NCBI GenBank assembly: GCA_051530055.1
Contig: CM121342.1
Span: forward strand, 9,873,480 to 9,937,479
Origin: Neoechinorhynchus agilis
Lineage: Eukaryota; Animalia; Acanthocephala
Direction: 5' to 3'
Length of the DNA stretch: 64,000 nucleotides
The translations under genes and the position numbers were made by a program. The stretch's first letter is position 1; each line of letters begins with the position of its first letter. Below are positions 5,496 to 59,413 of this stretch, piece by piece. The notes under the pieces are model-generated. The model searched no databases. It was not told where the DNA came from and was given only the letters and a program-made list of their open reading frames with translations.

Positions 5496-7217
5496 TCACG
5501 CTTTTTGCTTCACTTTTAACATTAATTGTCGATATTCATCACAAGAAGGCGTACTCATCTTCTCGACTCTGCTAACTGCTTGTGGTCCAGACCATTGAGC
5601 CATTGAACGTGCTAATCGTTTAGCATCCATTTCTCTAGCGCACTCATTCCTCAACTCGTAAATGTACTCCTGTTCAATTCGACGCTCAAGGTCCAAGAGT
5701 CCGGCGCCTTCCAAATCGAAATCGGGCTTGACGTAGTAGTGCACTCCAAAGTTTAAATTAGTCCGTCGACGAACTGAATATCGTTGGGTTTCATGGAAAC
5801 TGTAGAGAGGTTCGTGAAAAGTAAGGATTGGTAGCAGTATTGAAAGGGCTATGACAATTAGGGGAAGGTATTGAACAAATAGACTCGTCTGGTTGATTGG
5901 GTTGCGATTTGAATTGTTTTCCGCACGGGAATAAGTGCTTGCGCGATTGTAGCGCCGCTCACGATTCATTCTATAATTGAACATTTGAAAAAAAGAACTT
6001 TCGAGGGTTTTTTCACATCAAAACGAGCAATCAAAATATTTTTCAAATCCATACGTTCAAACAATGACTGATAAGGCCAGGTTTCCTCTTTTGAAACATT
6101 TCCTAATAAAGGAATTTTATTGCTAAGATATATTTTGAAAGAGGAAAACTAGCTTTATCACTCATTGTAAATTAATCGAATAGATCTCGCGAAATATATC
6201 TTAGCAATAAAATTCATTTTAAGCCAGTTGGGGGACCACAATTACAAAATTTACCATCCCGACGGATTTTCTTGATAAGTTTAAATAAAATATGTTTTAA
6301 TTTGATTACCCGGAGGATTATTCTCTTGAGAATTGTAAAAAATGATGGCCAAAGATGCGTGAACTTTTGTGTAATTCCAAAAAATTTCAAACAAAAACGA
6401 GTTTCCTTTTTTTCTAAGCTGCTTGGCGATAAAACGTGAGACTGCAAAAAACCCCGAGGAAAATGTAATAAATGTTCAATTTTATCGCTACGTCTCAATC
6501 TCGACATTCGATCGAGATCGGGTATTTCACCCGTGAAGAACATATGAAAAAAGTTTTGAGCCAAAAAATCATCATCTTCATCTTCAAACCACATATTGAA
6601 CCCGTTCATCTGAGTTGAGCTCGGTTGACTTCTACGATTATCCGCGGTCCGCCAATCTCCGGTTCTATCATAATCCGCTCGTTTTTGCGGATCGGATAAA
6701 ACCACATAAGCTTTTGAGACGGCCTTAAACGCTTCGTTGGCTCCGGGCGCTTTATTCTTGTCAGGATGTAAAAGAAGAGCAAGACGACGATAAGATTTCT
6801 TTAAATCCGACTCATTGGAGGTCTTTTCAACTGCCAACACTTCGTATAAAGTGCTGGCTTTACGAACGCGTTCGACGTGTTGTTCGTCGATTTTTGAGTA
6901 AGCCATAGATTTCTAGTGGCATCGAAAGCAACAAACTTAGAAATCCATTGATTTTACGGCTCATCGGGCTTTGGTCGTTTTTGAGGAGATTTTGACCGTT
7001 GGTGACCGTTCGAAGTAGTTGCTTCGTTATCTTCTTTAACGTCCCCTTGGGCGTATTTATTTGATAAGCATTCATCGAGTAAATCTTGGGCGTCTTGTGT
7101 TCGATATAGACGCAGTGATTTATTCAAATAGCGAATAGCTTCGGGAATTTTGGAATCGCGAATATACTCACGCGCAAAATTCACACAATCAATCGCGGCA
7201 ATCTTATTTGCCTCCAT
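5496..7217 (-). CDS. DNAJB12: DnaJ subfamily B member 12/14 (N-terminal helical domain, J domain, TM segment, DUF1977); 3 exons
   Basis: MEANK...A.DC...[12 protein letters not shown]-terminus; J domain LYEVL...[45 protein letters not shown]; C-terminal LYS...RRT.L.V.YYV...[17 protein letters not shown]. Introns near 6905-6957 and 5973-6483. Confidence 0.93.
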
Positions 7218-8924
7218 TTTGTTCAATGAATTCTTTAATGTCTACTAGAGAAGATGTCGGTGTGAACAACGTGTGTTCTTCCGCGGTCTATACGTCATTC
7301 TAATGACTAAAATCACAAACTTACAGAAGAATAGAAAACACGTAAACAACCTTGATCAAAAGGCATTCAAAAGATTGCCAAAACCAATCGCCAGTTTAAA
7401 ATAAAATCATTTCTTCTAAGCGCCGTAAAACAATAGAATGGGAGAGGAGCCAAGATCTTGCGGACGGTGGTGATTGCACGTTTTGTGCTTTATTGTAAGA
7501 AAAGTTAGTTTAAAAAAACAGTTAATGGAATTGATAAAATGACTGATTAAAATTAGTCGATTATTATGTATTCGTCTTTAACGCGATCCGTCCTCTTGGG
7601 TCCACTCGAACGCAATCGTCAATAAAATAAATGTTTAAGATTTAACTGTTCGTATTTGTTGATTGTTTTATTGCGCGCAGAAAATTTTTTTCTTGGAAAA
7701 CAATGCTTGAGAAGGATGCTGAGGCCTTGAAAATTCGCAAGATCGATTTCAATAAAACTCGAGTGTGTAACGATTCGCCATCGAGAATACACATCCACTC
7801 GAAGGTGGTTTCGGCGAGGCAATCGGCAGTTTAAAATTTACAATTATTTTAATTTTTACAGGCGCCATAAAACAACCAATAGAATAAATCCGTTAGTCTT
7901 AAGCGAAAGACGACGGTCAATCATTGAACGTCTTAATGGGATTGCTGCCTCTACATTGTTCTCAATCGGTTGCGGAAGGAAATCTCAAATCTCCGAAAAT
8001 CAGTTATGATCATAGGTTTAGTATTTTCCTCAATCCTTTTTAAAATCTTGCTTCGTCGATTTTTCTTTTTATTTCTAAGCAGCTTTTACGAACATTTTTT
8101 TCGTAAATAAATCTAGCCGTTATATTTCACCATAAACACGATTTTCCTTGAGAATAGAATCCTTTTTTAAGAATGTGGATACCATGAGCTCGACGTTTAA
8201 AGCAATCTCAGAATTTTATTGAAAAGCGATCACAAATTCATGTCCAAGGCTAAGAAAGGAATTCAGAAGAAGAAAATCAGGTTTCTGTCGAAAGAGCAGT
8301 AAAAATGATTTTGCCAATTATACTTTTTCTACTTGATTTGTTACGTTTGGAATACTTGTCAATACATTGTTTGGTTTCTAAAGTTTTTGCCTTCAGTCCA
8401 AGAAAATTAGAAAGCTATGCCACCATAAAGCAAACATTTATTTTTTAAATTCTTTTAACTAATTTTGTGCTCTTTAAAAGTTTTGCTGGTTTTGTTATTA
8501 AGAATTGATTAAACTACTTTTTCGTTCTATTCAGCAGCGACCAAAGTACGATCACAATGATGCTGATAAATTGATCAATCTGCAAACTGTAGAAAATTAG
8601 CGACGTTTTTTAAAGTGAAAAGTTCAATTTAGAACGATCGAATATTGGGCTAAATTATATTTTCAATAAAAGAAATAACAATGGCCCTAATTTTTGCCTG
8701 CCTCTGTTTTCATTATTTTGCTTTATATAATTTCCTATTTTATCATTTAGAACAATATCTCTTGTTTCATTTTTAAAAACTAAAAAATCATCTTTAATAT
8801 TAGATGAAAATGGTTGAATTCTTAAAAATATTAAATGTCGTTAAGCTTTTACTCTGAAGGGAACATCATAAGCATTCTGCGATTAACTCAGATTTTAGTC
8901 TAATATTTCTAAAATTTAGAATGA

Positions 8925-9355
8925 ACTTAACATTATTTACACGGACATAAACGTGATCAATGAAGCATATCTACCAGGACGACCAATGGAACTAATCGAG
9001 CTTATAAACTCATTGGGTACACAGACATTTTTTGTTATTTTTATTAACTGAATTTAGATATCGATATGCTAATCGTTCATAAATCCGAAAGCCATTCGGA
9101 GTTCGCTTTCGGAACATTCGCATACCTTTCAAAAACAACTGCTTTAAAACTCATTTGTCGACCCGAATTTCAGAATAGGCACGAAGGGTAAATATACTTA
9201 TTTAGATAATTAATTTTTTGATATAAAAATATTTAGAGTATTAATTATGTCAAAGTACATCTTTCACAATTGTTCCGGAAAAGATATTTCAATTAAAGGT
9301 GAAAACCCCAACTTCTTCAATCATTCTGGGCATATTTTTCTTTTGATCTACTGAT
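8925..9355 (+). CDS. 3' exons of a hypothetical protein
   Basis: Open exons joined by phase-consistent GT-AG introns (about 9017-9057 and 9189-9237): TDINVINEAYLPGRPMEL...|DIDMLIVHKSES...RHEG|VLIMSKYIF...IY*. Ends tail-to-tail with the 9401 ORF. Confidence 0.35.
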
Positions 9356-9400
9356 TAAAATCCTGTGAACGCAAACCCATTTTAAATTTGTCATTGTCCT

Positions 9401-14510: not shown

Positions 14511-14702
14511 GGAGAACAAGGAAAGACTCCCAATCGGTCATCTCCTGTACAAAGCCTCCGATCACACATTAAAACTCCTTCAAAGACAAGTCTCACCTCC
14601 CTTGCCTCAGCATCCGACATCCAGACACCTTCAGCAAAGATAGATGCTAGTAAGTGTGTGGATCGTGCTTTTCTTAAATTAATAAAACGTGTTTTATACG
14701 AT

Positions 14703-15490: not shown

Positions 15491-17219
15491 CTATTCTTCA
15501 TTTGCTATTTCTTGAGGTTCCGATACCTGCTCTTCTGTTGGCTTCCTCCAGATTCTACTAAACGTTGCTCTTGCACTTTGTCGTAGCCCCTTCATGTCAG
15601 AAAGCTCTGCCATCGTATGGTATTTTGTCTCAGGTAAAAATATTATCAGTATGGCAAGAAAAAGTGCAAATCCTCCAATCGAGAGCATAGTAACGAGTCG
15701 TTGAGAAGTAAGTTGCTCATTCAAGAAAGGACTTAATGCTGTTATGACTCGACTGAAAAAGATAGAAACTCCCATTCCGAATTGTCTGTATCTCGTTGGA
15801 AATAGTTCTGGTACGAATATCCAAACAAAATCAGCATTAGCCGCAGCCGAGAACTTTGCAATGTGATTGAAGACGTTCAATGCTGCATTATCGCTTGTAG
15901 GAAGGACAGCAAATATTATAGATATGAGTACAAGTAGAAGATGACTGAAAAGACTTAGAGTTTTTCGTCCGAAGAATCTCGTTGCGACGCCACATAAGAC
16001 AAATTGTGGAGCTTCAATAATAGCTGTGATAAAGAAATGGAGGTAAATGTTGGATGAGAATGCGGACGCTGATAGGGTAAATCCGAAATAACCAAAAGAA
16101 GCCAATGACATTATGAGACATCCGCAAAACAACGTGTATGGAAACAAAATTGACGAAAACATTGCTCTTAGGTTTTTCTTTAGCCGATTTAGTAACGTGA
16201 CACGGGTTTGTGCCGATGGATCATCAACGATCAGTCCGATATTGTCGTCAAGTGTACAAAATATTTGGTCCTGTGATTTCGTAGAGTTAGTTTTGTATGC
16301 TTCGGCCAATATTTTATTTACATCGGCTTGTCGTTTATGAACAGCTAGCCAAAATAAACTTTCTCTCATAATCCAATAATAGAGTACGGTGATTGCGACT
16401 GGAACATAAACTGTCAAATAAAGATTCCGCCATCCTCTAACAAAATAAGCGACTAAATCCAAGATCATCATTCCTATACCCCAAATGAAATTAGCCATTG
16501 TACACGGGATGCCCCGGTATTCGGCTGCAAAGATTTCAACGCTGAGAATATAAGAAGAGAGACCACACATCTCCCAGCATATTCCAGATAAAAATCGAAA
16601 TGCTATAAATAAATATCAAGATGATTCCGATCAATAAGAAAGATATAATGATTTTAGCTGATCGGATGCATCCTATTTAGATGGTATTTGAGAGCGCACA
16701 ACCGATTCCGCATATGATATTGAGCCAATATCCGAGAAGAGCGATTGGTTTCTTACCAAAGTTGTCGCCAAACGTTGACAAAACGGCTGCCCCGATCGCT
16801 GCTCCAATGAAGAAGGCTGACTGTGGAATATCCTTCAAGTATTCCCGATCGCAGTATAGATCAAAGGTAAACACCAGTGATCTGTCCTTGGGAAGTGGGT
16901 GCATGTAGCCGTTAGGACAGGGTATTGTTTTGTTTGATAGCGAAGTATAATTCTCAAAGACTTTACATTTTTCGAATTTTCCATCTACACCAACTGGAAT
17001 CGCGTCGCTCATTGAAACATTATCCGGGATCCAACATGTATAATCAGCATTATTCGTGAAATAATCAATGAGCGAAGTCATCGAGGTTACTATACTGTAG
17101 GATGAATTGATCAAGAACATCCAAGTCTGCCATAAACTTGTTCTAGTGAAATATAAATTAACTGTCGACATCTTCCGCAAGATACCTTCAATCTCCACAT
17201 TTGGAATCGAGTTTGACAT
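15491..17219 (-). CDS. SLC22-family organic cation/anion transporter (MFS), copy A; 2 exons
   Basis: Extracellular loop CWIP...C..F.NY...CPNG...FDLYCDR; motifs D.FGKKP, FRFLSG, VEIF...YRG, FFGRK, ELFPTRYR, FLPETK. One 64-nt intron at about 16615-16678. Confidence 0.93.
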
Positions 17220-29276: not shown

Positions 29277-31204
29277 CTAAATTTCGATCATTTTTCTTAT
29301 TTGTTCAGGATACGGAAAGTATTTGAGTGCACCGATTGCACAAATGGCAGGGGGTCCTGCTGATAGCATTTTTCTCGAAACTCTGACTAGATCATCACTC
29401 GATACTGCTTCGATCATCTCCACTGATTGATTGATTGATCTGTACTCTCCTTTTCCAATAACCTGCCTTACAACATCTTCAAAATAAGCGGGTCGCTGTT
29501 CTAATCCCATTAAATACACTGAACGTAACTGATTCTTGGATCTCCTAACTTCTTCCTAATATTCTGCTGTTAAAATAGTGAAATTTGCATTCACAACTGA
29601 CCTGTGAGTATGAATTCTTTGCGATTTTAGTCAATTGGTTTGTAATCGCCTGTACCATTTGCTGGGCGTATTGTGGATAAGAACTGGCATGCACGCACAA
29701 AAGACCAATGTCACGGTATGGATGAATGGACGTAGTTGCATTATAGATAAAGCCGTGGCGATTGAGCACATTCAAGTACATTCGCGCATACATTCCTTTT
29801 CCAGGTCCACCAGAGCTGAAGGACCCACCTCCACCGAGAAGTGTGCTTAGAACACAAGTGGCATAGAAATCTTCATGAGTGAATGGTTCAGTCTTATAGA
29901 TTGAATTATGATTTTTATAGGTAGTAATATGTTTAATATGAACTGTACTTAACGTGAGCAACGTGATAAAATTTCAGAAAAGCGAATATTATTTGAATTC
30001 CCAGCATCAACGGCGATGGTTTGGGATTTACGGCTATTTAAAAAATTAATTTTAACAATTTTTCTAGGCCACCGTGTGGCTGATGCCGTGATATTTTAAA
30101 AGATCTCAGAAGCAACTTTCCTAGTTCGCCATCAAATTACCTATGGTCAAATCCAATCTCGAAGACCGATACCAAAGTGAAGCAAATCAGGAAACGGATT
30201 TGGTCCGAGACTCATCTTAGACATGTCCTTTTCAATAAGAATATCCCCGCCGGTCCATTTAGCATGCGCATGATCGACCTGCGAATTGCTTGAACCAAAC
30301 TGAAAATTCTTTTGGACACTCATGAGAAAGTCGTTTGTGGATCGTGGTGTTATTCCACAAACCAGCAACCTATTTGGGTTTCGATGTACGTTTTGTACGT
30401 ATCGATGAATGTCATCTTTTTCAACAGCGAGTATGCTATCCGGATCTGGAAGCGTAGGTATTCCTAGGGTTTTCAGACCGAAAGCAGCTTTATGGATTGC
30501 CTGAATTACAACTGGACCGAATTCGAGACATGTATGAGCATCTTCGACTTCACCGATTGCATACCGTTTTGCTTCATCGAGATTTTCGTCCGTGAAATCG
30601 GGATATAGTACACATTCAGATAACAGATGGATCATTGGTTCCATCTGAGATGAATGACATGACACTGCGTAAATTGTCAAATCTCTATTAGGCACGAGTT
30701 GAAAAGTGGATATGTTTAGGGATAAATACCTGCTTGTTTGGCAATCACAAATTGCATTCGATTTCTCTAGTAGTTCAAGTATTGATTGGTGATCACGGAA
30801 TGAAGGTGTCGGAACCATAAATGCCATTTTCGATAGAATTTGCGGTATTGGTTTTTGCGAAGAACGAGCTCCGGAATCTATTGCAACTCCGATTGTACTG
30901 AATGCCGTCGATGAGTGTAAGAAACAGCGTGGTCGTTATGAACACTTTTATAAGGACCGCAATGTTTATCTCTACCCAATGCGACGCGTGGCCCATTCGT
31001 AATATTCAGGACTTCAACGGGATCAGCAAAACGTGATTGTTGATAGGCTACTGTTGCGTTATTTTTTAAAGAACCGGAAATTGGCTTCCATGGAATCCGC
31101 ATGGATGGAATCCTTAAAAACGCAAATAGACATGGAGCCGAATTTATATAAAATTCTTGCCTTGATTTTTGTCGTCTAATTTGATGGAAAATATTTCGTA
31201 TCAT
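29277..31204 (-). CDS. PMPCA: Mitochondrial processing peptidase alpha subunit; 5 exons
   Basis: NG.RVA, FSTIGVAIDSGAR, CDCQTSRD, AKWTGG, LLGGGGSFSSGGPGKGMYARMYLNVLNRH, RSKNQLRS.YLMGLEQRP..FEDV.RQV. Introns at about 30917-30975, 30685-30729, 29896-30161 and 29556-29601. Confidence 0.96.
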
Positions 31205-35041: not shown

Positions 35042-36837
35042 ATGTCCGGTAACCCATACGCTCGCTCTTATCCCATCAATAAAGTAAGTTTTCAATCGAT
35101 ATTGTATTGATCTTCGGCTTCAAAATTAGGACGCCATAATATCCAAATTCCACCAAAGGAGAGTAAAAAAGCGAGAACGCACTGTTCGTTTTACAGAATG
35201 CCTTGCCTCTAAGACCGAACTGCTGAACACTGAACGTCGTGGTTTCATTCAATTTGATCCCAATGATCCAGAAGATCGCCCATTCGGAATTACCCAAACA
35301 GATATTTTGGAAGATGCGAATCTGCTCATTCGTTCAAAACGGTTTGATTTGAATTTGGATCGATTTGGACCTTACACTCCTCGTTACACTCGCAATGGGC
35401 GCCATCTTCTTCTTGTTGGAAATCTAGGCCACGCCGCTGCTTTCGATTGGCAAACTAAACATCTCCTATTTGAAATGAACACCGATGAAGAAATTAGGGA
35501 TGCAACTTGGCTTCATGATTATTCTTTTTTTGCATGTGCTCAAAAACGATGGACGTACGTTTATGATAGACAAGGAGTAGAAATCCATTGCCTGAAAAGA
35601 TTTGATCGAACTACGCATTTAGATTTTCTGCCCTATCATTTTTTGTTGACAGCCATTAACTCAAGAGGCTATCTCTCATTCCTTGACGTATCCACTGGTC
35701 AACTTATCTCTTGCATTCGAACTTCTCGGTTCGGAGTTGCTCACGCTCTAAAGCACAATCCAACAAGTGGAATTTCGGTTCTGGCTCATAGCAACGGATC
35801 CATCACAATGTGGACGCCGACTTGTTCTGAGTTTGTCGCTGAAATGCATTGTCACACTAGCTCGGTCATTGATGTTTGCTTCGATAAAACCGGAAAGTCA
35901 GTATTTCGGTCGGTTATAAAAAAAATTACGGTGATTTTTTAGCTTACTTTACACGGCTGGAATTGATGCTAAACTCAAAATATTCGACGTTCGGACGATG
36001 AACCTTTTAAAGACCCACAGAATACGTACTCCAGCGAATGGAATTTGCGTGAGCCAAACAGGTCTCGTTGGGATTGCCATGTCTGAAAATATTGAGGTTA
36101 GTCACTTTTAGTAAAGTGATTTTCTTTATCATCCATTGCCCATAAATGTCGAGTTCATTTTCAATCATTGCCGATAAGATCTATCGAATGAAAGCGTTTT
36201 AAACAATTGATTTAAAATTTAGATTTTCAAATATCTCGACCAGAAGGATGAAATAGCCGAAGCGAGGTATATGCTCCACAGTATCCCGAACGCAGGAAGG
36301 ATAAAAACTGAATTTTGCCCTTTCGAAGACGTTCTTGCGATTGGACACAGAAATGGGCTTTCAAGTATAGTGGTTCCTGGTTCCGGTGAAGCCAATTTCG
36401 ATGCTTTTGAATGTAATCCTTATCAGACTAAGGAACAACGAGCTTTCTGGGAGGTACGCGCACTTCTTGATAAAATTCAACCGGACATGATAACACTGGA
36501 ACCGGATAAACTTGCCAATGTTGACGTGGAGGCAGCTTATGATGAACTAGAAAAGAAGCATCAAGCTTTGATAAATAAACAGCCCACGTTAACGCTAAGG
36601 AAAAGAACACGACATAAAAGGAAAATCTCTAGCCGACTCGTGGCTAATAGGCAAGCTCGTGAGCGGGCCATTCGTGATGCCGTTCGAAAGTACAAAGAAG
36701 CTGCAAAGAAAGTTAAAGGACCGATTCCCTTTAATTCAAAGATGGCTAAAGCAAATCGAGCGAAAGAGAAGAAATTAAAGAAGCAAAAGCTACTAAGTGG
36801 AGAGGGATATAATATGTTTGAAAGGTTTAAAAAATAA
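35042..36837 (+). CDS. WDR46: WD repeat protein 46 / Utp7 (BING4); 4 exons
   Basis: ELLNTE..GF, FDL.L..FGPY...YTRNGRHLLL.G..GH.AAFDW, FACAQK..TYVYD.QG.EIHCLK, FCPFEDVL.IGH..G.SSI.VPGSGEANFD.FE.NPY.TK.QR...EVR.LLDKIQP.MI.L. Canonical introns 35084-35129, about 35898-35942 and 36097-36221. Confidence 0.96.
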
Positions 36838-40315: not shown

Positions 40316-41345
40316 TCAGTGTTTCATGCAATTGTCGCAACTCCTGAATAGGCAATCAACAATTTGACCATGGTTTTCAAGATAACAACAATCAAATCGA
40401 TGGACTCTGCAAATCTTATAGCTATCCTTGCATATTTGTTCCAGGGTACTGATTACATTGTCCACCCCGTAGATGATATTCTCGTCAATGCAATCACGTT
40501 GATTATTGGAATGCACGTGAACAAAGTCCACTAATTTCACGGAAGCCTGGATACCATTATTGCCATTTCCGTCCAATCGATCACCGCTATGAAACAAAAG
40601 CAGAGAAACTGCATAGAACAAAAACATCCTTTGTTTAGCTAAATACGATCTCAGTTCGTTCAGTTGATCGATCATGTTTCTTACTTTGACACGTCCATAG
40701 GAAACATGCTTCTCGTGATCATCGGGAGAAAACCCCATAAAGTACGCAAGCGCATGAATCAAGTTCGCTCCGTCTATTTGCCTACAGCAGACCTTACGAT
40801 GAAGCTCAAACATATCTTTGCTTGGATGGTACTTTTGAAATCCTTTATCGGCTTCTCTTTAAGAGAGAGAGTTCAAAAATATCGAAAGAGAAATACCGAT
40901 CTACAATATGATATCCAGTTTTTTCAGAATCAGGGTACTTTGATCTCTGTCGCGAAATTTTAACTTCGTCTGCACTCGGGTCCCATGTTCTTCGACCCAT
41001 CTTTGCGTCCAGAATGTTGGGATGTGGTAGAAAAGGAACACAGAGGTTCTCTAGTCTAAGATACTTAATGTCGTTGAAATGATCGATGCCGCAAAAAGTA
41101 GGGATAATACGCCGAATAGCTAAACAGTCATCGCTTTGGTCACTGAAGACCTTTTCGTAGAATGATAGTTCGCGATGACCGTTATTTGTCGCTTCGACTG
41201 GCTTGAGGACGGTTCTGTATTTGTTGTTCTTTTCGAGAAGACCGAGTTTTCGTTTACACTTTCCATGAAAGTGGCCAGCTACCTGGTGAATCAACGGTGT
41301 ACAATCGTCCGGGACTTTAATTTCCGCAGCATCAACGGCTCTCAT
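40316..41345 (-). CDS. IPMK: Inositol polyphosphate multikinase; 2 exons
   Basis: HQVAGH, VLKP, REL.FYE, IP.F.G, YL.LENL, P.ILD.KMGRRTWDP, KYP, FYAVSLLL, VKLVDF.HV, D.NIIYGV. Intron near 40847-40904. Confidence 0.92.
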
Positions 41346-45896: not shown

Positions 45897-46334
45897 ATGG
45901 CTACCAAAAGCTCACCGCTTGTGAAGAAGTTCACTCAGGCTAAAATTATCCTAAGAATCCGGGAATTCCTTCAAGGAGTAAGTTCGTTTCGTGTATACTT
46001 TTTCCATTTCTCCTATGGTTTTTTTCAGTTTCCACCTATGGATTCTCACGACTACGCGTTTGAAATGTCTCGCAGATATCCAACTGTTTCGGAAATGAGA
46101 GGCGATTATCCGTTGGATGATATTCCTTTGGACCAGCCAGCGTATCATAAAAGAGATTACCGAAATATCGATCGCATTGCTCAATCAGTTGATAATATAG
46201 AACTGTTGAGCAGTGGAGAAGGTTTAAAAGATTTGGAGAAGACACCTGAATCAAGTTGGGCAAAAAGATCTGCTGGTCGAGCACTCAGCTGGGACCCTCC
46301 GTCTTTCTGGAAAACACGTCTTGGTGGTGATTGA
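45897..46334 (+). CDS. NDUFA7 (complex I B14.5a)-like; 2 exons, intron 45978-46028
   Basis: IILRIREFLQG (cf. IIQ..RNFL.G) and YH.RDYR (cf. YY..RD.RR); size matches; canonical intron keeps the frame. Confidence 0.5.
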   Translation: MATKSSPLVKKFTQAKIILRIREFLQGVSSFRVYFFHFSYGFFQFPPMDSHDYAFEMSRRYPTVSEMRGDYPLDDIPLDQPAYHKRDYRNIDRIAQSVDNIELLSSGEGLKDLEKTPESSWAKRSAGRALSWDPPSFWKTRLGGD

Positions 46335-46945
46335 AGCATGAACTTAGTTTTAATTTTTAATATTTCTTGGTTTCAAATTAAGGTCAATTTTTACTTAGTT
46401 CAACTTTGAATTCTTTTTAATCACGAAATTAGATGCCAAATAAAGAAGTTGAACTATTTAATTGCTAGCGCAAATCATATTTTGCCGTCCGGAATGTGAG
46501 AAACCTGTCGATTGGCTCATGCCATCACATCGAATCTGATGATTTAATGATTCACCTTTTAAACGAAAATAAATAGAATTAAGGTCAGGTCAGACCCATA
46601 GACCGACATTGCAAAGTGATTGTGGCAAAAAATTAATATTAGATATAAAATTCGCAAAAAATATAATATAGTTGCAAAACTTAAAAAATAACTTCAATCT
46701 TCTAAGCAGAGAATTGCAACTTTTTCAACGGGCCGAGGATCGTGGAGCAATGATTTTTAGATGTACTCGAGACGGAAAAATTTACGAGCAAATCACCGCC
46801 ACGATAATCATGATTTTTCCATTCATTTTAAACCTTTAGTAGTTGTTTTTGGAACATAGAAGCACAAAATTTAAAGTATTTGTTATGAAAGTCGATTTCT
46901 AGATTCTCTCAAATCATCGATTTGCTTATATAATCCTGATTTCAG

Positions 46946-48886
46946 ATGTCATCGTCGCTACGGTATGAGAATGGAATGCCTGACAACTCGATTATAACGG
47001 TTCAAAACGAATGCCGGTACATATCCATCAAATTTAATCGACAAGGTACACTTTTGTCGGCGGGTTGCTTTGACGGACATGTTGCCTTTTTCGACTTACT
47101 GAACCTTGAGATAGTATGCAAGATCGAAGCATTCTCTGAAGCAGTGACAAGTATGGATTTTTCTCGAGACGGTCATTTTTTTGCGGCCGGAAGTACGAAT
47201 TACAACACCAGTTCTTATTAGCATGGGGATAGGCCTTAAATTAATGAACTGAATTGGTGTGTACACTGTCAAAGTGTATCGACTTAAGACTCGCACTTGC
47301 ATTTTCACAAAAGTATTAAACGTTCCTATCACTAGTGTCGAATTTAATTCTAGGATTTCCGATCAACTAATCGTTTGCTCGGCATTCAAAGCGCCCGTTA
47401 TGTTCGGAATTGAAAATAAAATGGAATTCTCGTTCCATACTTTAAGCCATCGATTCTTAACTTTTTTGCAAAATTATTAGAATTCCTTTCATTAAATTTG
47501 CTATAAGTAAAATATCGACTCTTACAAAAGGTCTTCAAATCAAACTTTTCGTCGCACATTTGCATTTTTCTTGGCTCTTATCAAGTGCAAGGACGAGTGA
47601 ACATTCTTATAACGACGGTTGAGAATTGATGATATATCCGAGACAGGACAATGGGGATTTAGTGCTCTTGATGACGATAGTAACAATCTTTTCTTAGCTC
47701 AGAAAAATGCTGATATTAAGAAATATGAAAAGTATTCCCAATTTTTCCGTCAATACTCACTTGCGACCTATGACCGACGCGGCAAATTTGTATTCCTTAT
47801 AAATAATAGTTTTAAGCTTTGCTTGTATTCCGTTCAAGATAATCGAGTGGTGGGCTGTGCTTATCTGGCTTCAAAATGTGGTATGATAAATCAGTCTAAT
47901 AGGCCAAGACCAGTTGAGCAGCTTAAGTACGGTCGACGAGGACATTTTATTGCTCTTAATTCAGATCGATGCATTCGTTTATATTCCTTTAAAACAATAA
48001 AGGATCTAATTGATGTCGAGGGCAAAGAAGGAATTCCAGTTGTACCGGTTTTGAGAATTTTGCAAGACGATGTGGATACTCTTTGTCTTAAGCTTGAAAA
48101 TTACATTCTAAAATTTAAAATCAAGGGGGAAAGGGAGATCTGAAGATAGTTCCTAATTTCGCGATTCGTAGAAGAGGGAAAATTTTTCAAAGTTCAGATT
48201 ACACGAAGCGGATTCTTTTGCGTGGAATGTCACGTGAGATTTAAAAATAGTCGTATTTCTCTCTAGTTTTAAACTTAATTTCTTTTAAAACAATTTCAAA
48301 GTCTAAGACGAACACTAAAGCACGGATACAGTCCTTCACGTTTTCTACTGACGGTAGCTACTTGGCATTAGTTACGGTTGATCCAAAAAAGCTGCAGATA
48401 TTCGATGTCAATAAAGGTATATCAATTTACACAATTCCAATGTCGAACAAAGAACGATTATTTGATACAGATTGGCACCCTTACAAAGCGTCATTTGCTG
48501 TTATGTGCGGGGATGTATTTAGACTTTACGGAAACACTAATTTTTGGTCACAAAAAAACAATAATCCATACGAAGCGATGTTTTGTGAACTTGAGGACAA
48601 CGTGATTTATACTGAGGTTGAATCGGAGTTTGATAACAAGCATGAGGATATAGACGGCGATCGTTCATTGCTCAGTGAATGTGAGTTTTCAGAAGAGCAT
48701 AAGGAAATCGATTTGTATAAAATTCAAATGAGTGAAGGTGTGTTGAGCAGTGATGAAGACAGTATGGATAGAGCTAGCGACTTTTATATTATGCCGATCG
48801 ATAAACCTGAAATGATGAAGACATTATCTATTATACCTTTTCCGGATGTGAGAAACGTGAATCTTAAAAGAAAAATCGATGATTGA
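46946..48886 (+). CDS. RBBP5: RBBP5/Swd1-like WD40 protein (COMPASS subunit)
   Basis: FNRQGTLLSAGC.DG, VTS.DFSRDGH, APVM, LDDD, ATYDRRG, LQD.V, FS.DG.Y, L.D.DWHP, F.ELEDNV.Y.E.ESEFD..HED. Confidence 0.82.
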
Positions 48887-49790: not shown

Positions 49791-50052
49791 CCAGACCAGT
49801 TGCGTGGGTGTTTACTGCTCATAATAGATGGAAACAAAATCCTGTCAAATATTTTTTGTTTCAAACTACAGTCCACGTTTTAAATAATTTTAGTTGCTTT
49901 GAATTCGGACGAATCGATTACATTTATCGTGTAGCAAATATCGCTATCCAGTGCACAAGCGGAAACGTTTCTTTAAAAATATCTTAGCTGTACCGATTTT
50001 AATCTCAACCTAATGCCTTTGTATTCTTTAGATCAATTCTCGAACACTCACA

Positions 50053-53269: not shown

Positions 53270-56200
53270 CAATCACTCGTAGAATTTTCGCTTTCATCGA
53301 CTGTAATTTGCTTTGATTCCGACATTCCGTCCGTGCTTTCGCTCTGATTATCCTCTATTTCCGCTTTGTCTTCTTTGATTTCTTCACCTTATTAAAAACT
53401 CTTGGTTAAAGTTAGAAATTTACTAAGATCGGCAAACCATCGTGCTGATAATTTGACTTGTTTTTGACAGCATTTAAATCATTGTTAACTTCTTCAATAT
53501 TACCTTTTTCTATAATTGAGGAAATTGAATTTTTATTGTGACCTTAACACCAATCCTTGTAATTTTTTTACATAACTATATAGCAAACCTTCGCTTGTCT
53601 CCGTTGATTTGCTGTGTGGAATGTCAAAATTGGCTTTACCGATAACATTCTCGATTAAAGCATCCTTGGGATGTCCATGATCTTTATTATAATAAACTGG
53701 TTAAAAAAAATATTCCTGGAAACTAGCTGACCTTTTATAGTGCGAATTGAACGTTTCCCTTTTTCTTAAATAGTTTTTCAAATTTTTTGTTTTAATTTAA
53801 TTACGCACCTTTTTTGTTTGAAGTTAATTCATTGTCTGTATTTCTGTCTTTCTTCAGATTTTCTTTACTATTAGAACCTTTTATAAAATCACATATTGAA
53901 GTAAAAGTGAGGTTCAAGTATGAAGGAAAAATTCAAGCAGCCTTCGAGTTCGTGTTTAAGTACAATTTGTTCCTTGGTTTCCTGATGTGTTTGTTCACAG
54001 CGAAAATTGTACATGTTTTAAACGATATATTACTTAAATAGTTAAATTTAACAGCTTCACAAGATGCTACGTTTTAATTTTCATCAATACAAAAAAATCG
54101 TTCGATGTCACACATTTTAAAAGATTAATACCCTTGACGTTCTTATTAAATGACAAATCCTTAGGTGCTTCCAAATGCTGTATGTTATTTAGGGAGTTCG
54201 TGTCCCAAAATATTTAGGCAATTGATGAAGATTATTAAAAGGAAAAAATGGAACAATTTTGTGAATGTAAAGTGCGTACAATACTCGCAGTATTGATGCT
54301 ACCTCTATCCTTGTCGAATAACAAGTTGTTTGGCACTTCTGCTTCCGGTTCCGATTTAATAAGTATTGGATCATCAATGCTTGCGTTTTCATAGCCGCTA
54401 TTGAACTTCGCATCCGATATTTTTATACTCTTTTTGATTAAATCAATATCTAGTTTATTTTGTTGCGCTTAAACATTAAGATTTTGTAATTTTTAAAGCA
54501 TTGCAAACCTTCATTCATTTCCTTTGATTTTGCTGTTTTATCGCTAGTAATCTTTTTAGAAGGCTCACCAGCACCAACCTCCCCTCTCTTTAATTGCTTC
54601 TTCAAAGTTGTGCTCGCTTCTTTTTCTTTAAAAGCGAAGATTCATTAAACTTTAGCGTTGGGCGCAAAGGCTCATTCCTACGTTTATTAAGGGATTTTGC
54701 TAACTCATATTCTTTACCCGAACTAGCAACGGTCCTCCTCTTATCTTTTAAACGTATGCCATCAACATGACTAAAAGGATCTTCTAAAAACCTTAAATAA
54801 AACAAATGGAATCAAAAATCACATACCGTTTACATCGTCAATAGAAAAAATGCTCGGTCTTTGGAAGTTCGGTTCTATATTTTTACAAAGATTGATTCTT
54901 ATTTTTTTGTTAAGACTTTTCGAATATAGCCATCGATTTACCGGAAAACTAAGATTTGCCTCTTTAGCTTAATTATGTAAAACGTTTTCTTACGTTATAA
55001 TGCAATTTTCATCAACTTTCTGCAGTTCTATTTTCTCACAAAACCATCTTGAGTCACCGGTGATGTCCAGGCATAATCGATCAATCTTTTGTATGTTGTC
55101 TTAGAGCACCATTGACCAAACTAGCTCACCTGCCCGAGCATCGGCTCAACGAATTTCAAGGCAAAAACATCTCTTTGACCAGGTCCAAAAGGCGTTTTAT
55201 TAGTTAAAGAATTACTTAATCGAAAATTTCTCGAGCAGTCGTGTTTTCCTTGAAGCACGACACAAACAACGGTACCAGCTCCAGAAAAATCAGAATTATC
55301 TCTTGTGCCACTTTGCACAGTGAGCATGTAGCATCTATCCTCAAAAACTGCTCCTGTTGAATAAATATCCGCTTTTACTTTTTCCACTTTAATTACTCAA
55401 CCAATAATTTTTTTTAAATTCGCTCAACTAAACCTACGCATTTCAATATGTGAATATTCAAATGATGCCGATTTTATTAGTTTTCCTTTATATTTCTGAA
55501 TTTCATTATCTCCAGTTATTAATTTTTCAAATTTAAATCTACGAACAAAAGTTTGAATGAAAGGCTCAACGAATACCGTTCTCAAACATAAACTCTTTTC
55601 TTGCTTTCATATCCTCAATTTTAATCCATTCGCAAAACCACGAATCAGATTGTTTGCCGTTATGCCAGATTTCCAGAAAGGCTATATCTGGAATTTCTAT
55701 AACATCATGCAGCTGAAAAATGTCTATATTGTTTCTCATAAATGGATTTGAATTAAAATTGTTTCGTTCCAATTTGAGAGCTGGTCCGGAAACGATGTCA
55801 GATGAAAATTGAACAAATACAATTTGGTTTCCGTGGTGAAATCCAACTTTGTCTTGATCGCCTGTTTTAACGTAGATCCAATATTTCGTTTTTCCTATTT
55901 TGAAACTTAAAAGAATTAGTTGGCAAAGTCCACAGACCCTCATCAAGAGATCCGCCTGGAAAGACATGCAATAATCGTGAACCCAGAATACAATTTATCT
56001 GAAAGCTGTTTGGCAATAGTAAATGTAAAGAAGAACCTTTAAAATAGCTAACAAATAATCACGATTTTCTTTGAGGTCAACAATTTTGACATGGGAGCAA
56101 ACCCATGAGTTCAGTTCATCATTCAACACGGCCATGCCAATACCGTCGATCTAAGTTCAAATATGAAATAAAAGATCCAAAATTTCACATACTGTTTTTG

Positions 56201-58115
56201 TTGAAGGCCAATTAAAATATAACTTATCCTCACGTTTGGTATCGAACATATTATTATGTGTTGCAATGTTTTCAGTGATTGTAATATTTCCTGCATAAAT
56301 CTCTATTTTTATCGATGTAAGTTTGTCAATCCAGCCGACTTTTGTTCCAATAAGGACTGCGTGAGTATATCCTTTAAAACATTACAATGTAAAACTCAAA
56401 CTATTCTGTTTGCTAACCTTTTATATTTCCTTTTGAAACTTTTTTTGTTACTAAATAAAAATATAAGATTAAAGTCTTTACTGATCGGTGTAACAACATA
56501 TGCGTTAAACTATGCATAAGTAATAAAAAAATCGGTCAAATCAAAATTTAAATGCGATTTTAATATTGGTTTTCATATTGCTTTGGAAACCAATTCAATA
56601 TGCTTAACAAAATTCAATAAATAGTTAATTAACATACGTTTGTAAGGAAGGTGCTTTAAAATTCCATCCATTTGGGTGATGTATACTGTAATCGAAGAAT
56701 CTTTGGATTCTGCAGCGATTTTATTAAAGACCGGAAATCTTTAAATAATGAGGATGAAAAGTGCACATAGTAGCAAATGAACATACGATAAAGATCTCTT
56801 CTCTTGGTTGTCCATCCAATCCAACTTTATAAATTCAATATCCCATTCCTTGACACATCCATCCACATGGACAATTTCTACCGCACAAACACTGTTTAGT
56901 TTTTTTCCGTTGAACAAATAATTTTCACGCTTGTAGGCTTGAGCACTTTGTATAAAGTCGTCTTTTTCGTTAAGGTCAAAATATTCGGTCGCTTCGTTTC
57001 TGCAACCAATAAGCCGCAATACAATTGGGGAAGATTTAAGATCCCGAAACAATGATAATCCCCTTGATCCAGTTTTTATCATAACCCGGTAATCAACCCC
57101 TATCAATTTCAGTCAAACACAAATGCTTTAAAATTAGTTAAAAACATACTATCCGCTTGACCACCGATTAACTTTTCAATCAACGACTCTTGGACACTAC
57201 AGATTGTTTTTATGAGTATTTTCTTCACAGATTTACTAACCATTCTTTATCTTCCTTACATTTTTGGTTAATATCATCGATAAAACTTCGCATATTTGTT
57301 AAGATGAGATTTAGACAAACGATAACATTATCGTAACATTGTAAAAATATTGCTGTTTCTCCGATCGTCGTTATATTCTTCGCTCTATTGAAAATATAAT
57401 TTAACCTTAGCTCCAACTCACAAAGAATTGCCCGAAAGTCCATAATCTTGTTCAGTTTAATCAGCGACTCACTGTATGAAAATACTTCCTCTAATTTTTG
57501 CTCGAAACATTGTTGAATGTTTTTTGTTCCAACTTCGATTCGTACCTCATTTCTCGGACCCTTATGCCGCAGTGCGTTCAATTGACGGACTGATTGCGCA
57601 ACGTTAACATGAACCACTGACAATTTTTTTCTAAAATCCTCTAATCTACGTCCAAGAGCGGAGTCAAGTCCAATAACTTCTTTGTCTTTAGCAAACTTCA
57701 ACGGATCATTCCGTGATTCAATTTTGTCATTAACATCAGAAAACTTTGGACTATTCTTGTGGGCGGTACTTGTTTGCACACTTTGTTTAATATTTGACAT
57801 CACTTTAAATTCCTGCTCAATCTCCTTCAGTTCCGCCCTCTCGTCTTCTACAACTTTTGCTTTGATCTCGTAATGTGCACGAATTCTATCTATTTCAAAA
57901 AGATGATAATATCTTTTAACTTCTGACGATTTTAGACATTGAAGACCAAGGTCGCATAATTCTATAGATGTGGTAAATAGTTTTATGATTGATGAGTTTA
58001 ATAGATCTGTCATGCTAAAAGTAAAATGGAAAACAGTATAGAAGTTCATCTTAAGTTTACGAATAAGATTTCCATAGTTACGGTAAACTGTCTTTTTCGC
58101 TATAAATGACAGCAA
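53270..58115 (-). CDS. Multi-exon protein with an N-terminal helical/coiled-coil region and three PLAT/LH2 domains; 3' exons uncertain
   Basis: PLAT signatures DYRV.IKTG, KYWIYVKTGD...DIF.L...I..LEIWHN....SWFCEWIKIED, YMLTVQSG...V.VVLQG...F.PGQRDVF.L. Phase-consistent GT-AG introns. Whether the exons below 55 kb belong to the same gene is inferred. Confidence 0.65.
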
Positions 58116-58286
58116 TGGAGTGATGATTGAAGTTCACGAACACTCTTTTTGATCAGCAGTTCATCTTCAGTCTTTTAAAACAACAACCAACCATGTGAAT
58201 GTCACAAGTAAAAACACAATACTTAACGATAAAAAATTAATTCTAATGCTAAAACTCACACCGCTCATTATTTTTCAAAGGAGGTT

Positions 58287-59413
58287 TTATTGAATAAAGT
58301 TCTTGTTAACCATATAAATCTCTCCAAAGGTAGTAACGTACATAATCAAATCGTTTCCCGTGTAAAAACGTCCAATATCAATTTTATGATACTTGACCTG
58401 AAACTCACTATATTGGCCAGGAGCTTCGAAAAACCTTGTATCCCGGTGAAATATTCTAAAACATTGGTGCAGTCGAACCAAAGCTTTGAAATATCTGTAC
58501 GTGATGGCCATACTTATCGGACGTTCATGTTGGAGATTATGTGTTTCCAAAACAAGCTGTTTAACATGTCTACACATATAATCGATCTCTACGTTCTCCA
58601 TAAAATCAATTTCGGTTCCCTCGATATCCATTTTTACTACATCGATTATCCGTCTCTCTAGCCTTGCGTATCGAAGAAATTCCTTGAAGGTCAGCATTGA
58701 GCCTGGATTCGGAACGGAGGACGTATAATGAGCTGTTCCGTAGCCAAGGTTGTGAAAAAAAAATTTTGGTTTGTATTCCACTGTTAGTTGCTCTCCGGCT
58801 TCAAACTTTGCTTGTACTGAGATTGGAAATGAAAATGGATCTAGTGAATGCACCTCGCATCCATAAACACGATTCATTTCTTCATCGAATGTTGCGCATT
58901 GGCTGCACCCACTTATTCCATATGACAAAATAAGACAATTGTTCCTTAAGCTCCTTCTCTCTTCTTGCAAACTTGTGGAAGTTGCACAATAACGAATTTG
59001 AAGTATTTTAAATTAAAGATTCTAAAGCTAATATTTTTGCATAAAAGCCCTTGTAGCTCTAAGTACATTGAAAGAAGAGACTAACACTATTATGACTCAT
59101 CGAATCCTAAAATTATTAGTGTAGGAGGCAGAAGAGAGCCGGGCATTACCGGTCCTACACCTTTATCCATACAAACGAACCAGAGTAAATCGACCCTTCC
59201 ATGAGTTCTATTTTTGTAATATTCATCCGGATATTCGGCCTGGTCGATCAGCCCGACATCTCCAACTCGTATTTGATTCTTGCACTCGTACCCATTGATC
59301 AAATCAAGAAGATTATCTTCGACTTTGACTTTTGTGGTTGTCCTGTAATATAAGAAAAGACTTACTAGAATCAACGCTGTCCAAACAACGATTAGTGTTC
59401 TTCGAGGGGCCAT
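58287..59413 (-). CDS. METTL24-like (FkbM/Methyltransf_22-type) methyltransferase with N-terminal membrane anchor; 2 exons
   Basis: TM anchor; C....RVG; WFVC.D; CLILSYGI, FD.EM...YGCEVHS.DP, IDVVKMDIEG.E, VKQL..E.H. Confidence 0.78.

Follow-up and report, generated by a model that had tools for sequence, protein, structure and literature searches.

Inserts that interrupt coding sequences of Neoechinorhynchus agilis are true introns: they are kept in the genomic DNA and are cut precisely from poly-A RNA. It is probably their fold, rather than a GT/AG-type sequence, that marks them for excision, and they likely originate from foldback transposons that targeted TA. The analyzed window, by which we mean the whole stretch of DNA under study, has 64 kb (CM121342.1 of GCA_051530055.1). 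One of its ORFs shows 99% identity to the N. agilis protein ACOME3_006896 of NCBI, which is placed on this contig. Contigs from three public poly-A RNA runs (X10, X11 and X12) were compared with this window. An independent WGS run (X8, ~20x), obtained from a sample different from that of the assembly, served as the DNA control; it is assumed that the X8 DNA, like the RNA, comes from whole worms. All features are listed in Table 1.

Table 1. Introns, candidate introns and related features in the 64-kb window of N. agilis.
Feature	Position	Strand	Description
DNAJB12 large intron (predicted)	5972..6485	-	511 nt, ATA direct repeat, terminal stem of at least 10 bp
DNAJB12 first intron (predicted)	6913..6957	-	44 nt, GT..TA or TA..AG, no terminal stem
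SLC22 copy a intron (paralogous, predicted)	16614..16679	-	64-nt insert, one base differs from copy b
PMPCA GT-AG intron (predicted control)	29556..29601	-	46 nt, stemless; duplex -5.7 kcal/mol, p 0.3
PMPCA non-canonical site 2 (predicted)	29900..30163	-	~260-263 nt, several possible ends; 8-bp stem near both ends
PMPCA GT-AG intron (predicted control)	30685..30729	-	45 nt, in frame, stemless; duplex -1.7 kcal/mol, p 0.9
PMPCA non-canonical site 1 (predicted)	30917..30975	-	~53-59 nt, several possible ends; frame change between ORFs
WDR46 further GT-AG candidate	35909-35941	+	33 nt
WDR46 GT-AG intron (predicted control)	36097..36222	+	126 nt, without terminal stem
IPMK hairpin intron (predicted)	40847..40904	-	52 nt at 40850-40901, GAT direct repeat; or 58-nt GT..AT
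Intron of gene upstream of RBBP5	46328..46698	+	370 nt, TG..AA or GA..AT, 7-bp end stem
AG acceptor, RBBP5	46944..46946	+	immediately 5' of ATG; RNA contigs bear a foreign leader ending in AAAACTTACAAGCA
RBBP5 gene	exons 46946-47200, 47262-47442, 47635-48076, 48316-48886	+	484-aa ORF once three inserts are removed
RBBP5 intron 1	47201-47261, slides by 4 to 47205-47265	+	61 nt, TACA direct repeat, terminal stem of at least 10 bp
RBBP5 intron 2	47443-47634, slides by 2 (to 47636)	+	192 nt, TA direct repeat, 15-bp terminal stem
RBBP5 intron 3	48077-48315, slides by 2 (to 48317)	+	239 nt, TA direct repeat, 9-bp terminal stem
SLC22 copy b intron	51176-51239, slides by 2 (to 51241)	-	64 nt, TA direct repeat, 7+9-bp interrupted terminal stem
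METTL24-like interruption (candidate)	58949..59148	-	200-nt hairpin intron with TAA repeat, or GT-AG of ~196 nt

In contigs of all three runs, segments of exactly 61, 192 and 239 nt are missing from RBBP5 and one of exactly 64 nt from SLC22 copy b (SLC22b). The skips reopen reading frames of 484 aa (RBBP5) and 554 aa (SLC22b). The inserts bear stops or frameshifts, so that the proteins could not be made without their removal. RBBP5 was identified by PDB matches for exon 1 and exon 4, and a homologue (P0061) aligns gap-free over junctions 1 and 2. The joint of RBBP5 intron 1 has a depth of 117-203 in X10, X11 and X12 and is found in no WGS read. That of intron 3 has a depth of 109-165 in the three runs; its short side is 28+2 letters, which is the overlap expected at assembly-path branches, assuming 31-letter words. 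In the three RNA runs, no unspliced contig covers RBBP5 intron 1 or intron 2, and intron 3 is covered by one unspliced low-depth contig (X10, 48049-48345, depth 26). Within RBBP5 intron 3, there are also noise-like, low-depth joints from single runs (48100>48280, 48100>48285, 48139>48191).

Both copies of SLC22 have a stop-bearing 64-nt insert, which separates ...ALSNTI from YLFIAFRFLSG. For copy b, no DNA read is joined across it. Copy a is located within a 3.48-kb duplication (97.4% identity), and its predicted intron differs by an A to G change in the 3' arm, which converts a U-A pair to U-G. RNA supports five junctions in all; the fifth, seen in one run, is that of the 370-nt intron upstream of RBBP5, which has T as a 1-nt repeat. 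Its joint occurs in X10 only, with a short side of 29+1 letters, and links 46327 to an ORF running to 46836, with the frame continuing. The pairing of its ends is not significant (p 0.23).

At ~20x, X8 contains no read with any of the four confirmed joints, and its depth across the four inserts equals that of the flanks. As the joints are present in RNA but absent from WGS data with even DNA depth, excision acts on RNA. DNA elimination, assembly error and pseudogenes were rejected because the WGS data show neither the joints nor a loss of depth over the inserts. A preceding analysis without database searches (the sequence-only reading) had postulated non-GT-AG inserts that are closed by a stem and precisely removed, and this is supported, with the RNA joints of RBBP5 and SLC22b showing the removal. 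It had assumed one such insert in RBBP5; the non-GT-AG character stands, but the three RNA runs reveal three inserts. It had also cautioned that transcripts might use nearby GT-AG sites or retain the inserts, and that raw reads might expose assembly errors. The RNA joints are exact and non-GT-AG, with only the one low-depth unspliced contig, and the X8 reads, free of joints and even in depth, speak against misassembly.

Direct repeats allow 2-5 equivalent positions for each junction. Every equivalent position of the four junctions confirmed by RNA was listed, and neither GT-AG nor GC-AG occurs among them. The four confirmed inserts are flanked by TA direct repeats (TACA in one). The piece removed is the insert plus one copy of a short direct repeat, which is TA at four of the five junctions with RNA support, and therefore the mRNA reads as though the insert had never existed. 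The 5' ends of the confirmed introns are TACAAC, TAAGCC, TACTCT and TAAATA. A 3' end in AT or AC, by which the sequence-only reading had characterized the class, is possible for these four and for the 370-nt intron as one of the 2-5 placements. It is thus allowed, but it is not demonstrable as a defining feature because every junction sits in a direct repeat (TA, TACA), which is the simpler common feature. The idea that such elements would be GT...AC introns in either orientation fits only a candidate solution for PMPCA; no RNA-confirmed intron can be read as GT...AC. An AG..AC or AG..AT reading is available for none of the four confirmed introns at any placement, and a start in AG is possible only in RBBP5 intron 2, as AG..TA. 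Signals of U12-type AT-AC introns (5' /RTATCCTT; branch site TCCTTAAC near the 3' end) were not found in the confirmed introns, the sole TTCTTAAC-like motif lying at the 5' end of RBBP5 intron 2.

When candidates, open in-frame ones only, must have a direct repeat no shorter than 2 nt and are ordered by terminal duplex, the true junctions rank 1st, 3rd, 2nd and 1st among 857-1972 candidates. The best TA-flanked candidate is the true junction in all four cases, as read from the top seven listed. Applied to DNAJB12, this rule leads to a model that is collinear with its homologues.

The ends are paired in the MFE and centroid folds of all four confirmed introns. The terminal duplex was evaluated by pairing the first with the last 20 nt of the insert and comparing the result with 6000 random genomic segments. 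Values range from -12.8 to -19.2 kcal/mol (p 0.0003-0.009), which beats 99-99.97% of random segments (RBBP5 intron 1: -16.1, p 0.001; intron 2: -19.2, p 0.0003; intron 3: -12.8, p 0.009; SLC22b: -17.9, p 0.0005). The stem starts 0-5 nt from the junction, and unpaired nucleotides, summed over both sides, number 5, 8, 8 and 5, so that the distance between junction and stem varies. In PMPCA and WDR46, four introns predicted to be GT-AG are random-like (p 0.3-0.9), which agrees with the earlier statement that the canonical introns inspected in this window (WDR46, NDUFA7) lack the stem. One of these, the 45-nt intron of PMPCA, is taken out in NCBI model P0063. Terminal inverted repeats had been claimed for every insert; this is true of the four confirmed ones, whereas pairing is weak at the two PMPCA sites (p 0.08 and 0.23).

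A search with the Rfam covariance models over the whole window yielded no family that reaches its gathering score. No sequence is common to the introns, no second copy of any of them is present in the 64 kb, and no multi-copy transposon family was found there. TA-flanked foldbacks occur outside genes as well (e.g., a perfect 20-bp pair at 38291-38396). TA-flanked stems of at least 10 bp are not in excess over shuffles (61 versus 32-66).

Additional cases are predicted from homology. Without the 511-nt insert, DNAJB12 is a 392-aa protein that is collinear with six homologues, including the transmembrane segment, which makes this case stronger than the sequence-only reading had judged it. The IPMK insert has a bulged 13-bp terminal stem (duplex -15.4 kcal/mol, p 0.001). 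Judged by sequence, the 511-nt insert and the 52-nt IPMK insert fit the pattern of the confirmed introns. For the first intron of DNAJB12, the GT-AG pair spans 45 nt and breaks the frame, which needs the removal of 44 nt; either the assembly may be wrong by 1 nt here or the intron may be half-canonical. In PMPCA, frame and homology make two non-GT-AG sites necessary. At site 1, a 59-nt GT..AC solution retains the conserved AFSTIGV, and no in-frame GT-AG solution retains FSTIGV; pairing is weak (p 0.075). Site 2 gives p 0.008 in a contiguous-stem test and p 0.23 in the duplex test. The METTL24-like interruption is ambiguous and may be a hairpin intron or a GT-AG intron; its paralogue P0065 has 21 additional residues at this site. 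Overall, ~10-12 non-canonical introns stand against ~4-6 predicted GT-AG introns in the window.

At the 5' end of RBBP5, contigs of X11 and X12 have loose ends at 46946. The sequence of the leader is not encoded nearby, and spliced-leader trans-splicing is probable.

With these introns, N. agilis joins the organisms in which hairpin introns are known, namely protists related to Euglena, a dinoflagellate parasite and a single group of tunicates. The literature searched contains no paper describing such introns in Acanthocephala, consistent with the supposition that they are undescribed in this lineage. The parallels drawn earlier with euglenids and Fritillaria are apt. To our knowledge, an excision machinery apart from the standard spliceosome is only suspected, even in Euglena. 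Nonconventional introns make up ~70% of the introns of euglenids (Euglena gracilis, E. agilis), and their trans-acting factors are unknown (PMC12501133, PMC11170887). Common to both systems are non-GT/AG borders, terminal inverted repeats and direct repeats at the junctions that render the cut ambiguous (PMC12501133, PMC11170887). Also shared are the lack of a sequence common to the introns, the presence of conventional introns alongside (here predicted) and a suspected MITE-like origin. The confirmed introns thus have the euglenid-type features (borders other than GT/C-AG, pairing ends, direct repeats, removal from RNA), but the host is an animal rather than a protist, and the repeat is mostly TA. 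Amoebophrya is, like N. agilis, a parasite whose proteins evolve fast, and for its introner elements a hairpin is proposed to join the exon ends (PMC7789003). Its introns also have direct repeats overlapping the boundaries and no dinucleotide signature; the repeats have 3-5 nt, as compared with 2-4 nt here, and many of its elements belong to repeated families, whereas no intron has a second copy within our 64 kb. Non-canonical introns of the Fritillaria type (introners) are characterized by membership in multi-copy MITE families, the inverted repeats of which provide the splice sites. [quoted passage not shown] 2019, as cited in PMC13326754). The U2 spliceosome is required there, and U2AF is duplicated (bioRxiv 10.1101/2025.08.15.670264). 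In N. agilis, by contrast, predicted GT-AG introns with normal signals persist, and AG/AC or AG/AT is found in no confirmed intron.

The fold would be the mark for excision because the introns have no common end sequence and a helix encloses both of their ends, which would normally keep U1 and U2AF from binding. Flanking U-A steps could lengthen the helix and set the 3'-most base of one exon beside the 5'-most base of the next. It is plausible that pairing replaces 3' AG recognition, as previously suggested. The predicted GT-AG introns with T-rich 3' ends and the AG trans-splice acceptor indicate that the standard splice-site code is seemingly intact. The state may thus be nearer to the two-code condition of Euglena than to the globally shifted spliceosome of Fritillaria. 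Excision might be performed by the spliceosome core, recruited via a structure-binding factor, or by a separate endonuclease and ligase. The origin would most likely be in TA-targeting, MITE-like foldback DNA transposons, as direct repeat plus inverted repeat is their expected footprint; TA-flanked stems being no commoner than in shuffles, it is this footprint that argues for such an origin. The weak pairing of the 370-nt intron and of the PMPCA sites implies that the stem may not be obligatory.

It is tempting to speculate, though only tentatively, that hairpin-guided cutting and rejoining of RNA proceeds independently of the spliceosome in this animal and erases foldback-transposon insertions from coding exons, with helix and U-A steps placing the cuts and a ligase rejoining the ends. 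If true, this would be an animal form of "RNA IES removal". A relaxed U2 spliceosome (with altered or duplicated U2AF or a modified snRNA), operating by lariat chemistry on introns whose stems and repeats are transposon leftovers without a role in excision, is likewise possible but rather doubtful. It could account for the inconstant distance from junction to stem, for the weak pairing at some non-canonical sites and for the possibly half-canonical 44-nt intron of DNAJB12, and among animals, only the case of Fritillaria has been studied by experiment (bioRxiv 10.1101/2025.08.15.670264; PMC13326754). However, such a spliceosome would find no common end sequence to read (neither AG..AC nor AG..AT in any confirmed intron) and would face stable helices enclosing both ends, while well-formed predicted GT-AG introns persist alongside, as does an AG acceptor for trans-splicing. 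Strong stems in introns without a common sequence are, moreover, hard to square with passive old relics.

Paramecium IESs have TA at both ends, leave one TA upon removal from DNA and are thought to be of Tc1/mariner-type ancestry. The TA boundaries and the exact loss of an element together with one TA copy recall them, so that TA-bounded inserts might be cut from somatic DNA, with mRNAs copied from the processed DNA. This is very improbable, as the inserts here are retained in DNA and missing only from RNA: X8 has neither joined reads nor reduced insert depth, and one RNA run has an unspliced contig across RBBP5 intron 3. Template switching by reverse transcriptase classically occurs where a hairpin is flanked by direct repeats, and the low-depth single-run joints inside RBBP5 intron 3 do resemble such noise. 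An artefact of this kind, misassembled RNA contigs or pseudogenes can nevertheless hardly be credited as the explanation, since the skipped form is the sole or dominant one in three libraries and each skip reopens a long conserved ORF by removing stops or frameshifts. Conventional GT-AG introns whose boundaries were misplaced, with alternatives of this kind available in the METTL24-like gene (from the sequence) and in IPMK (according to the sequence-only reading), have a negligible chance: the exact RNA junctions of RBBP5 and SLC22b cannot slide onto GT-AG, a forced DNAJB12 model loses conserved sequence, and this explanation is refuted for the five RNA-supported junctions.

As a consequence of the hairpin-type intron class, published gene models are broken in this region: in the NCBI annotation, all affected genes that were checked are truncated, split or mis-joined, and the models break down precisely at the insert sites. 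RBBP5 is represented by a 148-aa C-terminal piece only and IPMK by a 165-aa C-terminal ORF only. Both copies of SLC22 are split at the intron into 152 + 359 aa. In DNAJB12, where GT-AG was forced, ~36 residues are missing at the insert, as is the 90-aa N-terminal domain. The PMPCA model begins downstream of site 1 and is split at site 2 (211 + 156 aa), and the METTL24-like gene is also split (107 + 196 aa). WDR46, for which only GT-AG introns are predicted, is annotated as one intact protein of 525 aa.

The stretch from 46100 to 52000 was compared with Logan contigs of three poly-A RNA runs (X10, X11 and X12) and with raw reads of one WGS run (about 20x), which comes from a sample other than that of the assembly. 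The public runs of the same species that match the window comprise several RNA runs from one study and WGS and Hi-C runs from another sample. Four inserts, three in RBBP5 and one in SLC22 copy b (see Table), are present in DNA and absent from mature RNA, because the RNA contigs skip them and the WGS reads do not. No read of the WGS run contains any of the four joints, and at all four sites the insert and its flanks have equal WGS depth. The inserts are removed at the RNA level, and exactly: both genes then have one open frame (RBBP5, 484 aa; SLC22b, 554 aa), and the RBBP5 homologue P0061 (33% identical) is gap-free across junctions 1 and 2. The 239-nt RBBP5 insert is also found in an unspliced contig of one RNA run (depth 26 vs 165), which is what pre-mRNA would give. 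The short side of its joint has only 28+2 letters in all three RNA runs, as expected for the overlap at assembly path branches if contigs are assumed to be built from 31-letter words. A fifth joint (46327>46698, 370 nt) was seen in one RNA run only; the frame of the gene upstream of RBBP5 runs on for 46 codons there. All five junctions found in this stretch are non-canonical. When a protein collection was searched for spliced proteins from RNA assemblies, NCBI genome models alone matched.

Table. Genes of the window with their deposited models, and confirmed or predicted introns. Duplex energies are for the first versus the last 20 nt.
Feature	Position	Strand	Length (nt)	RNA runs (contig depth)	Equivalent end pairs (direct repeat)	Duplex energy, kcal/mol (p)	NCBI model
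DNAJB12	5496-7226	-					mis-joined
SLC22 copy a	15491-17249	-					split, 152 + 359 aa
PMPCA / MPP-alpha	29280-31204	-					split, 211 + 156 aa; N-terminus missing
WDR46 (predicted GT-AG introns only)	about 35130-36837	+					one intact protein, 525 aa
IPMK	40316-41345	-					165 aa
Gene without assigned name, upstream of RBBP5	45897-46836	+					
RBBP5	46946-48886	+					148-aa fragment
SLC22 copy b	50053-51781	-					split, 152 + 359 aa
Two PLAT-domain genes	about 53269-58013	-					
METTL24-like	58287-59413	-					split, 107 + 196 aa
RBBP5 intron 1	47201-47261	+	61	3/3 (117-203)	TA..TG, AC..GT, CA..TA, AA..AC, AC..CA (TACA)	-16.1 (0.001)	
RBBP5 intron 2	47443-47634	+	192	3/3 (117-203)	TA..TA, AA..AT, AG..TA (TA)	-19.2 (0.0003)	
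RBBP5 intron 3	48077-48315	+	239	3/3 (109-165)	TA..AC, AC..CT, CT..TA (TA)	-12.8 (0.009)	
SLC22b intron	51176-51239	-	64	3/3 (31-61)	TA..AA, AA..AT, AA..TA (TA)	-17.9 (0.0005)	
DNAJB12, first predicted intron	6913-6957	-	44				
DNAJB12, large predicted intron	5972-6485	-	511		(ATA)		
IPMK, predicted intron			52		(GAT)	-15.4 (0.001)	
PMPCA, predicted GT-AG introns	30685-30729 and 29556-29601	-					
Predicted GT-AG introns, n=4 (PMPCA 45, 46 nt; WDR46 33, 126 nt)						-1.7 to -5.7 (0.3-0.9)	

The sequence-only reading had proposed introns that are not of the GT-AG type, and this holds for the transcripts: none of the four confirmed introns can be placed as GT-AG, GC-AG or AT-AC with U12 signals. 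Every confirmed junction sits in a direct repeat, so that several placements of the cut are equivalent, and the excised piece consists of the insert plus one repeat copy. A 3' end in AT or AC, also proposed, is a permitted reading in all four cases, but it is not distinguishable from the other placements and is largely a consequence of the TA repeat at the junctions. GT..AC ends, suggested for inverted repeats starting with GT, are a possible reading in none of the four (0/4). Several known routes were considered and rejected. U12-type introns are ruled out (signals absent), as is A-to-I editing that turns AU/AA ends into GU/AG (no placement is AT..AA). The flanks, inspected by eye, have no exon-exon helix of the tRNA-type bulge-helix-bulge, and IRE1-type loops and hammerhead-like cores are ruled out by the lack of a consensus and of an Rfam match.

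The intron ends pair with each other in all four confirmed introns, in MFE as well as centroid folds. Duplex energies were compared with those of 6000 random genomic segments of similar length. The terminal stem noticed from the sequence exceeds the level of random segments and of canonical introns (p 0.0003-0.009 for the hairpin introns vs 0.3-0.9 for predicted GT-AG introns), and a contiguous-stem statistic gives a ranking that agrees. When candidates must have a direct repeat of 2 nt or more and are ranked by duplex energy, the true junctions come 1st, 3rd, 2nd and 1st, the open in-frame candidates numbering 857-1972; each is the best TA-flanked candidate by reading of the top seven listed. 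The stem shows where an intron lies without defining the exact cut. The unpaired nucleotides from cut to stem, summed over both sides, number 5, 8, 8 and 5 and are thus not constant. The introns are flanked by self-complementary U-A steps, through which the helix can continue up to the junction. Searching for TA...TA with a stem of at least 7 bp at any of 36 offsets was uninformative (3421-4495 matches vs about 5900 in shuffles), and per-intron null distributions were used in its place.

We consider it fairly probable that the fold itself is the recognition signal, because the introns share no end sequence, because both of their ends are buried in a helix, and because the standard splice code seems intact alongside. 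A helix at the ends would normally keep U1 and U2AF from binding. Signs of an intact code are the T-rich 3' ends of the predicted GT-AG introns and the TTTCAG directly before the RBBP5 ATG (46944-46946), the point at which RNA contigs bear a foreign leader. The catalyst might be the spliceosome core, or an endonuclease together with a ligase. That the spliceosome has merely become relaxed, with the stems as relics, is a tentative alternative to such structure-guided recognition. Elimination of the inserts from DNA is very improbable, given the joint-free WGS reads and the even depth over the inserts. No better are the chances of an artefact. Hairpins with direct repeats do provoke template switching by reverse transcriptase (RT), but such switching cannot account for the loss of nearly all insert copies from three libraries, nor would it restore conserved frames. 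What RT noise looks like is illustrated by alternative joints inside RBBP5 intron 3 (within 48100-48285 and 48139-48191; 179, 184 and 51 nt), which have low depth, occur in a single run, have TT/TTT repeats or none, and show no stem at their ends. These joints probably reflect noise (RT or assembly) or cryptic events. Ordinary GT-AG introns with mis-set boundaries are the least credible explanation.

In all, the window is estimated to have about 10-12 non-canonical introns, confirmed and predicted, vs about 4-6 predicted ones of the GT-AG type. In DNAJB12, the repeat-plus-stem rule yields the large predicted intron, which has a terminal stem of at least 10 bp. Its removal gives a 392-aa protein that lines up collinearly with six homologues across the transmembrane segment. 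A 544-nt removal was dropped, as the 511-nt solution agrees with the homologues. In the NCBI model, which forces a GT-AG pair, about 36 residues are missing at this place, and the 90-aa N-terminal domain is absent. To join the N-terminal domain in frame, removal of the 44-nt intron is needed; it has no stem and reads GT..TA or TA..AG, the obvious GT-AG pair spanning 45 nt. Here the assembly may be wrong by 1 nt, or the intron may be half-canonical. A long palindrome of about 110-160 nt with a 26-bp stem is nested in the 511-nt intron (6061-6219), so that one foldback contains another; a related piece is found at 4836-4902.

The predicted IPMK intron is a bulged 13-bp hairpin; the alternative is the 58-nt GT..AT version from the sequence-only reading. 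PMPCA has two clean predicted GT-AG introns, the 45-nt one being used in the NCBI model, and two further sites (about 30917-30975 and 29900-30163, minus strand) where conserved residues survive no in-frame GT-AG removal. Pairing at these two sites is weak (duplex p 0.075 and 0.23; contiguous stem at the second, p 0.008), and their ends allow several placements (at least three at the first, of 53, 56 and 59 nt, and several at the second). The repeat-plus-stem rule yields only implausible deletions there. The share of PMPCA words found in the RNA runs (0.82-0.83) is compatible with insert removal but not specific to particular inserts. The METTL24-like gene has a TAA-flanked 200-nt hairpin solution and also, by reading of the sequence, a GT-AG solution; a paralogue has 21 extra residues at the interruption.

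DNA transposons of the cut-and-paste type that target TA have as their footprint a direct repeat together with a terminal inverted repeat. For the hairpin introns, such an origin is suggested rather than demonstrated, because a search for MITE families found no second intron copies within the window except in the SLC22 paralogue, and because TA-flanked stems of at least 10 bp are not enriched over the whole window (61 vs 32-66 in shuffles). TA-flanked foldbacks are present outside genes too. One at 38291-38396, in a retroelement-rich stretch, has 106 nt, a perfect 20-bp terminal inverted repeat and TA on both sides; it is likely to be a MITE that targets TA, and it may serve as a model of how hairpin introns arose. 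The inserts of the two SLC22 paralogues differ once, with pairing kept, which has no statistical weight as a compensatory change because overall identity is 97.4%. Should recognition indeed depend on the stem, these introns would offer a natural system for learning how genomes neutralise transposon insertions in exons.

As to age, RBBP5 exon 3 had two weak matches among all protein representatives, one of them P0061 (Logan run ERR13848439). The 1064-nt contig encoding it has a pyrimidine-rich stretch and AG directly before the ATG, and thus looks genomic or unprocessed. The contig continues without interruption where RBBP5 introns 1 and 2 would lie; its ORF ends some 10 codons beyond the intron 3 site, shortly before the end of the contig. 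As the contig looks genomic yet seems to lack introns 1 and 2, there are hints that these are lineage-specific.

At the RBBP5 start, contigs of X11 and X12 carry a foreign leader (14-21 nt, ending AAAACTTACAAGCA) joined exactly at the ATG; no copy of it is encoded near RBBP5. [quoted passage not shown] The gene upstream ends at about 46836, which leaves only some 110 nt to the start of RBBP5. A contig of X10 spans from an exon of that gene into RBBP5 without the leader and looks like an operon-style polycistronic precursor.

Nonconventional introns with a hairpin and direct repeats, known from euglenids and Amoebophrya, are thus found in a protostome animal phylum. The kind is already known; what is new, within the literature searched, is that transcripts prove it for a protostome animal. 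The apparent coexistence of two codes resembles the state of Euglena (PMC12501133), where the excision factors are still unknown and thought to be distinct from the spliceosome, and that of Amoebophrya (PMC7789003). Fritillaria differs: GT-AG introns are almost gone and the U2 spliceosome does the removal (bioRxiv 10.1101/2025.08.15.670264; PMC13326754), whereas predicted GT-AG introns persist in N. agilis. Fritillaria introns mostly have AG..AC/AT ends, a reading open to none of the four confirmed here. The literature searched had nothing on acanthocephalan or syndermatan intron types, in line with the earlier suggestion that the mixed state may be undescribed for this lineage. The N. agilis transcriptome paper (74 single whole worms, poly-A mRNA-seq, BRAKER annotation) nowhere mentions introns. 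A genome-wide test is feasible now, since these 74 libraries (BioProject PRJNA1223661), Hi-C/WGS data and a genome assembled to chromosome level are public.

There is a practical cost, as the deposited models of affected genes are broken: each checked gene bearing a hairpin intron is truncated, split or mis-joined. For Acanthocephala and Seisonidea, very high fractions of missing BUSCOs have been reported and massive gene loss has been claimed (PMC8351084, PMC12256650). These claims rest partly on GT-AG-based gene finding and merit re-examination by junction-unbiased mapping.

The window is AT-rich (32-46% GC) and gene-dense. One of its ORFs matches the N. agilis protein ACOME3_006896 at 99% identity (16.4-Mb record CM121342.1, assembly GCA_051530055.1). 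SLC22 and its flanks lie in a 3.48-kb segmental duplication (14698-18167 and 49258-52730, 97.4% identity). WGS depth reaches about 125x at 50828-51024; therefore, part of this duplication may have extra genomic copies. There are two satellites, at 18759-28896 (167-bp unit, 60.6 copies, 95% matches) and at 43185-45640 (234-bp unit, 10.5 copies, 94% matches). Reverse-transcriptase-like ORF fragments are found at 12000-15000, 37000-39600 and 60800-63600. The first of these lies in a GC-rich stretch whose GC skew is strongly negative (more C), and it probably represents a decayed non-LTR or Penelope-like retroelement.
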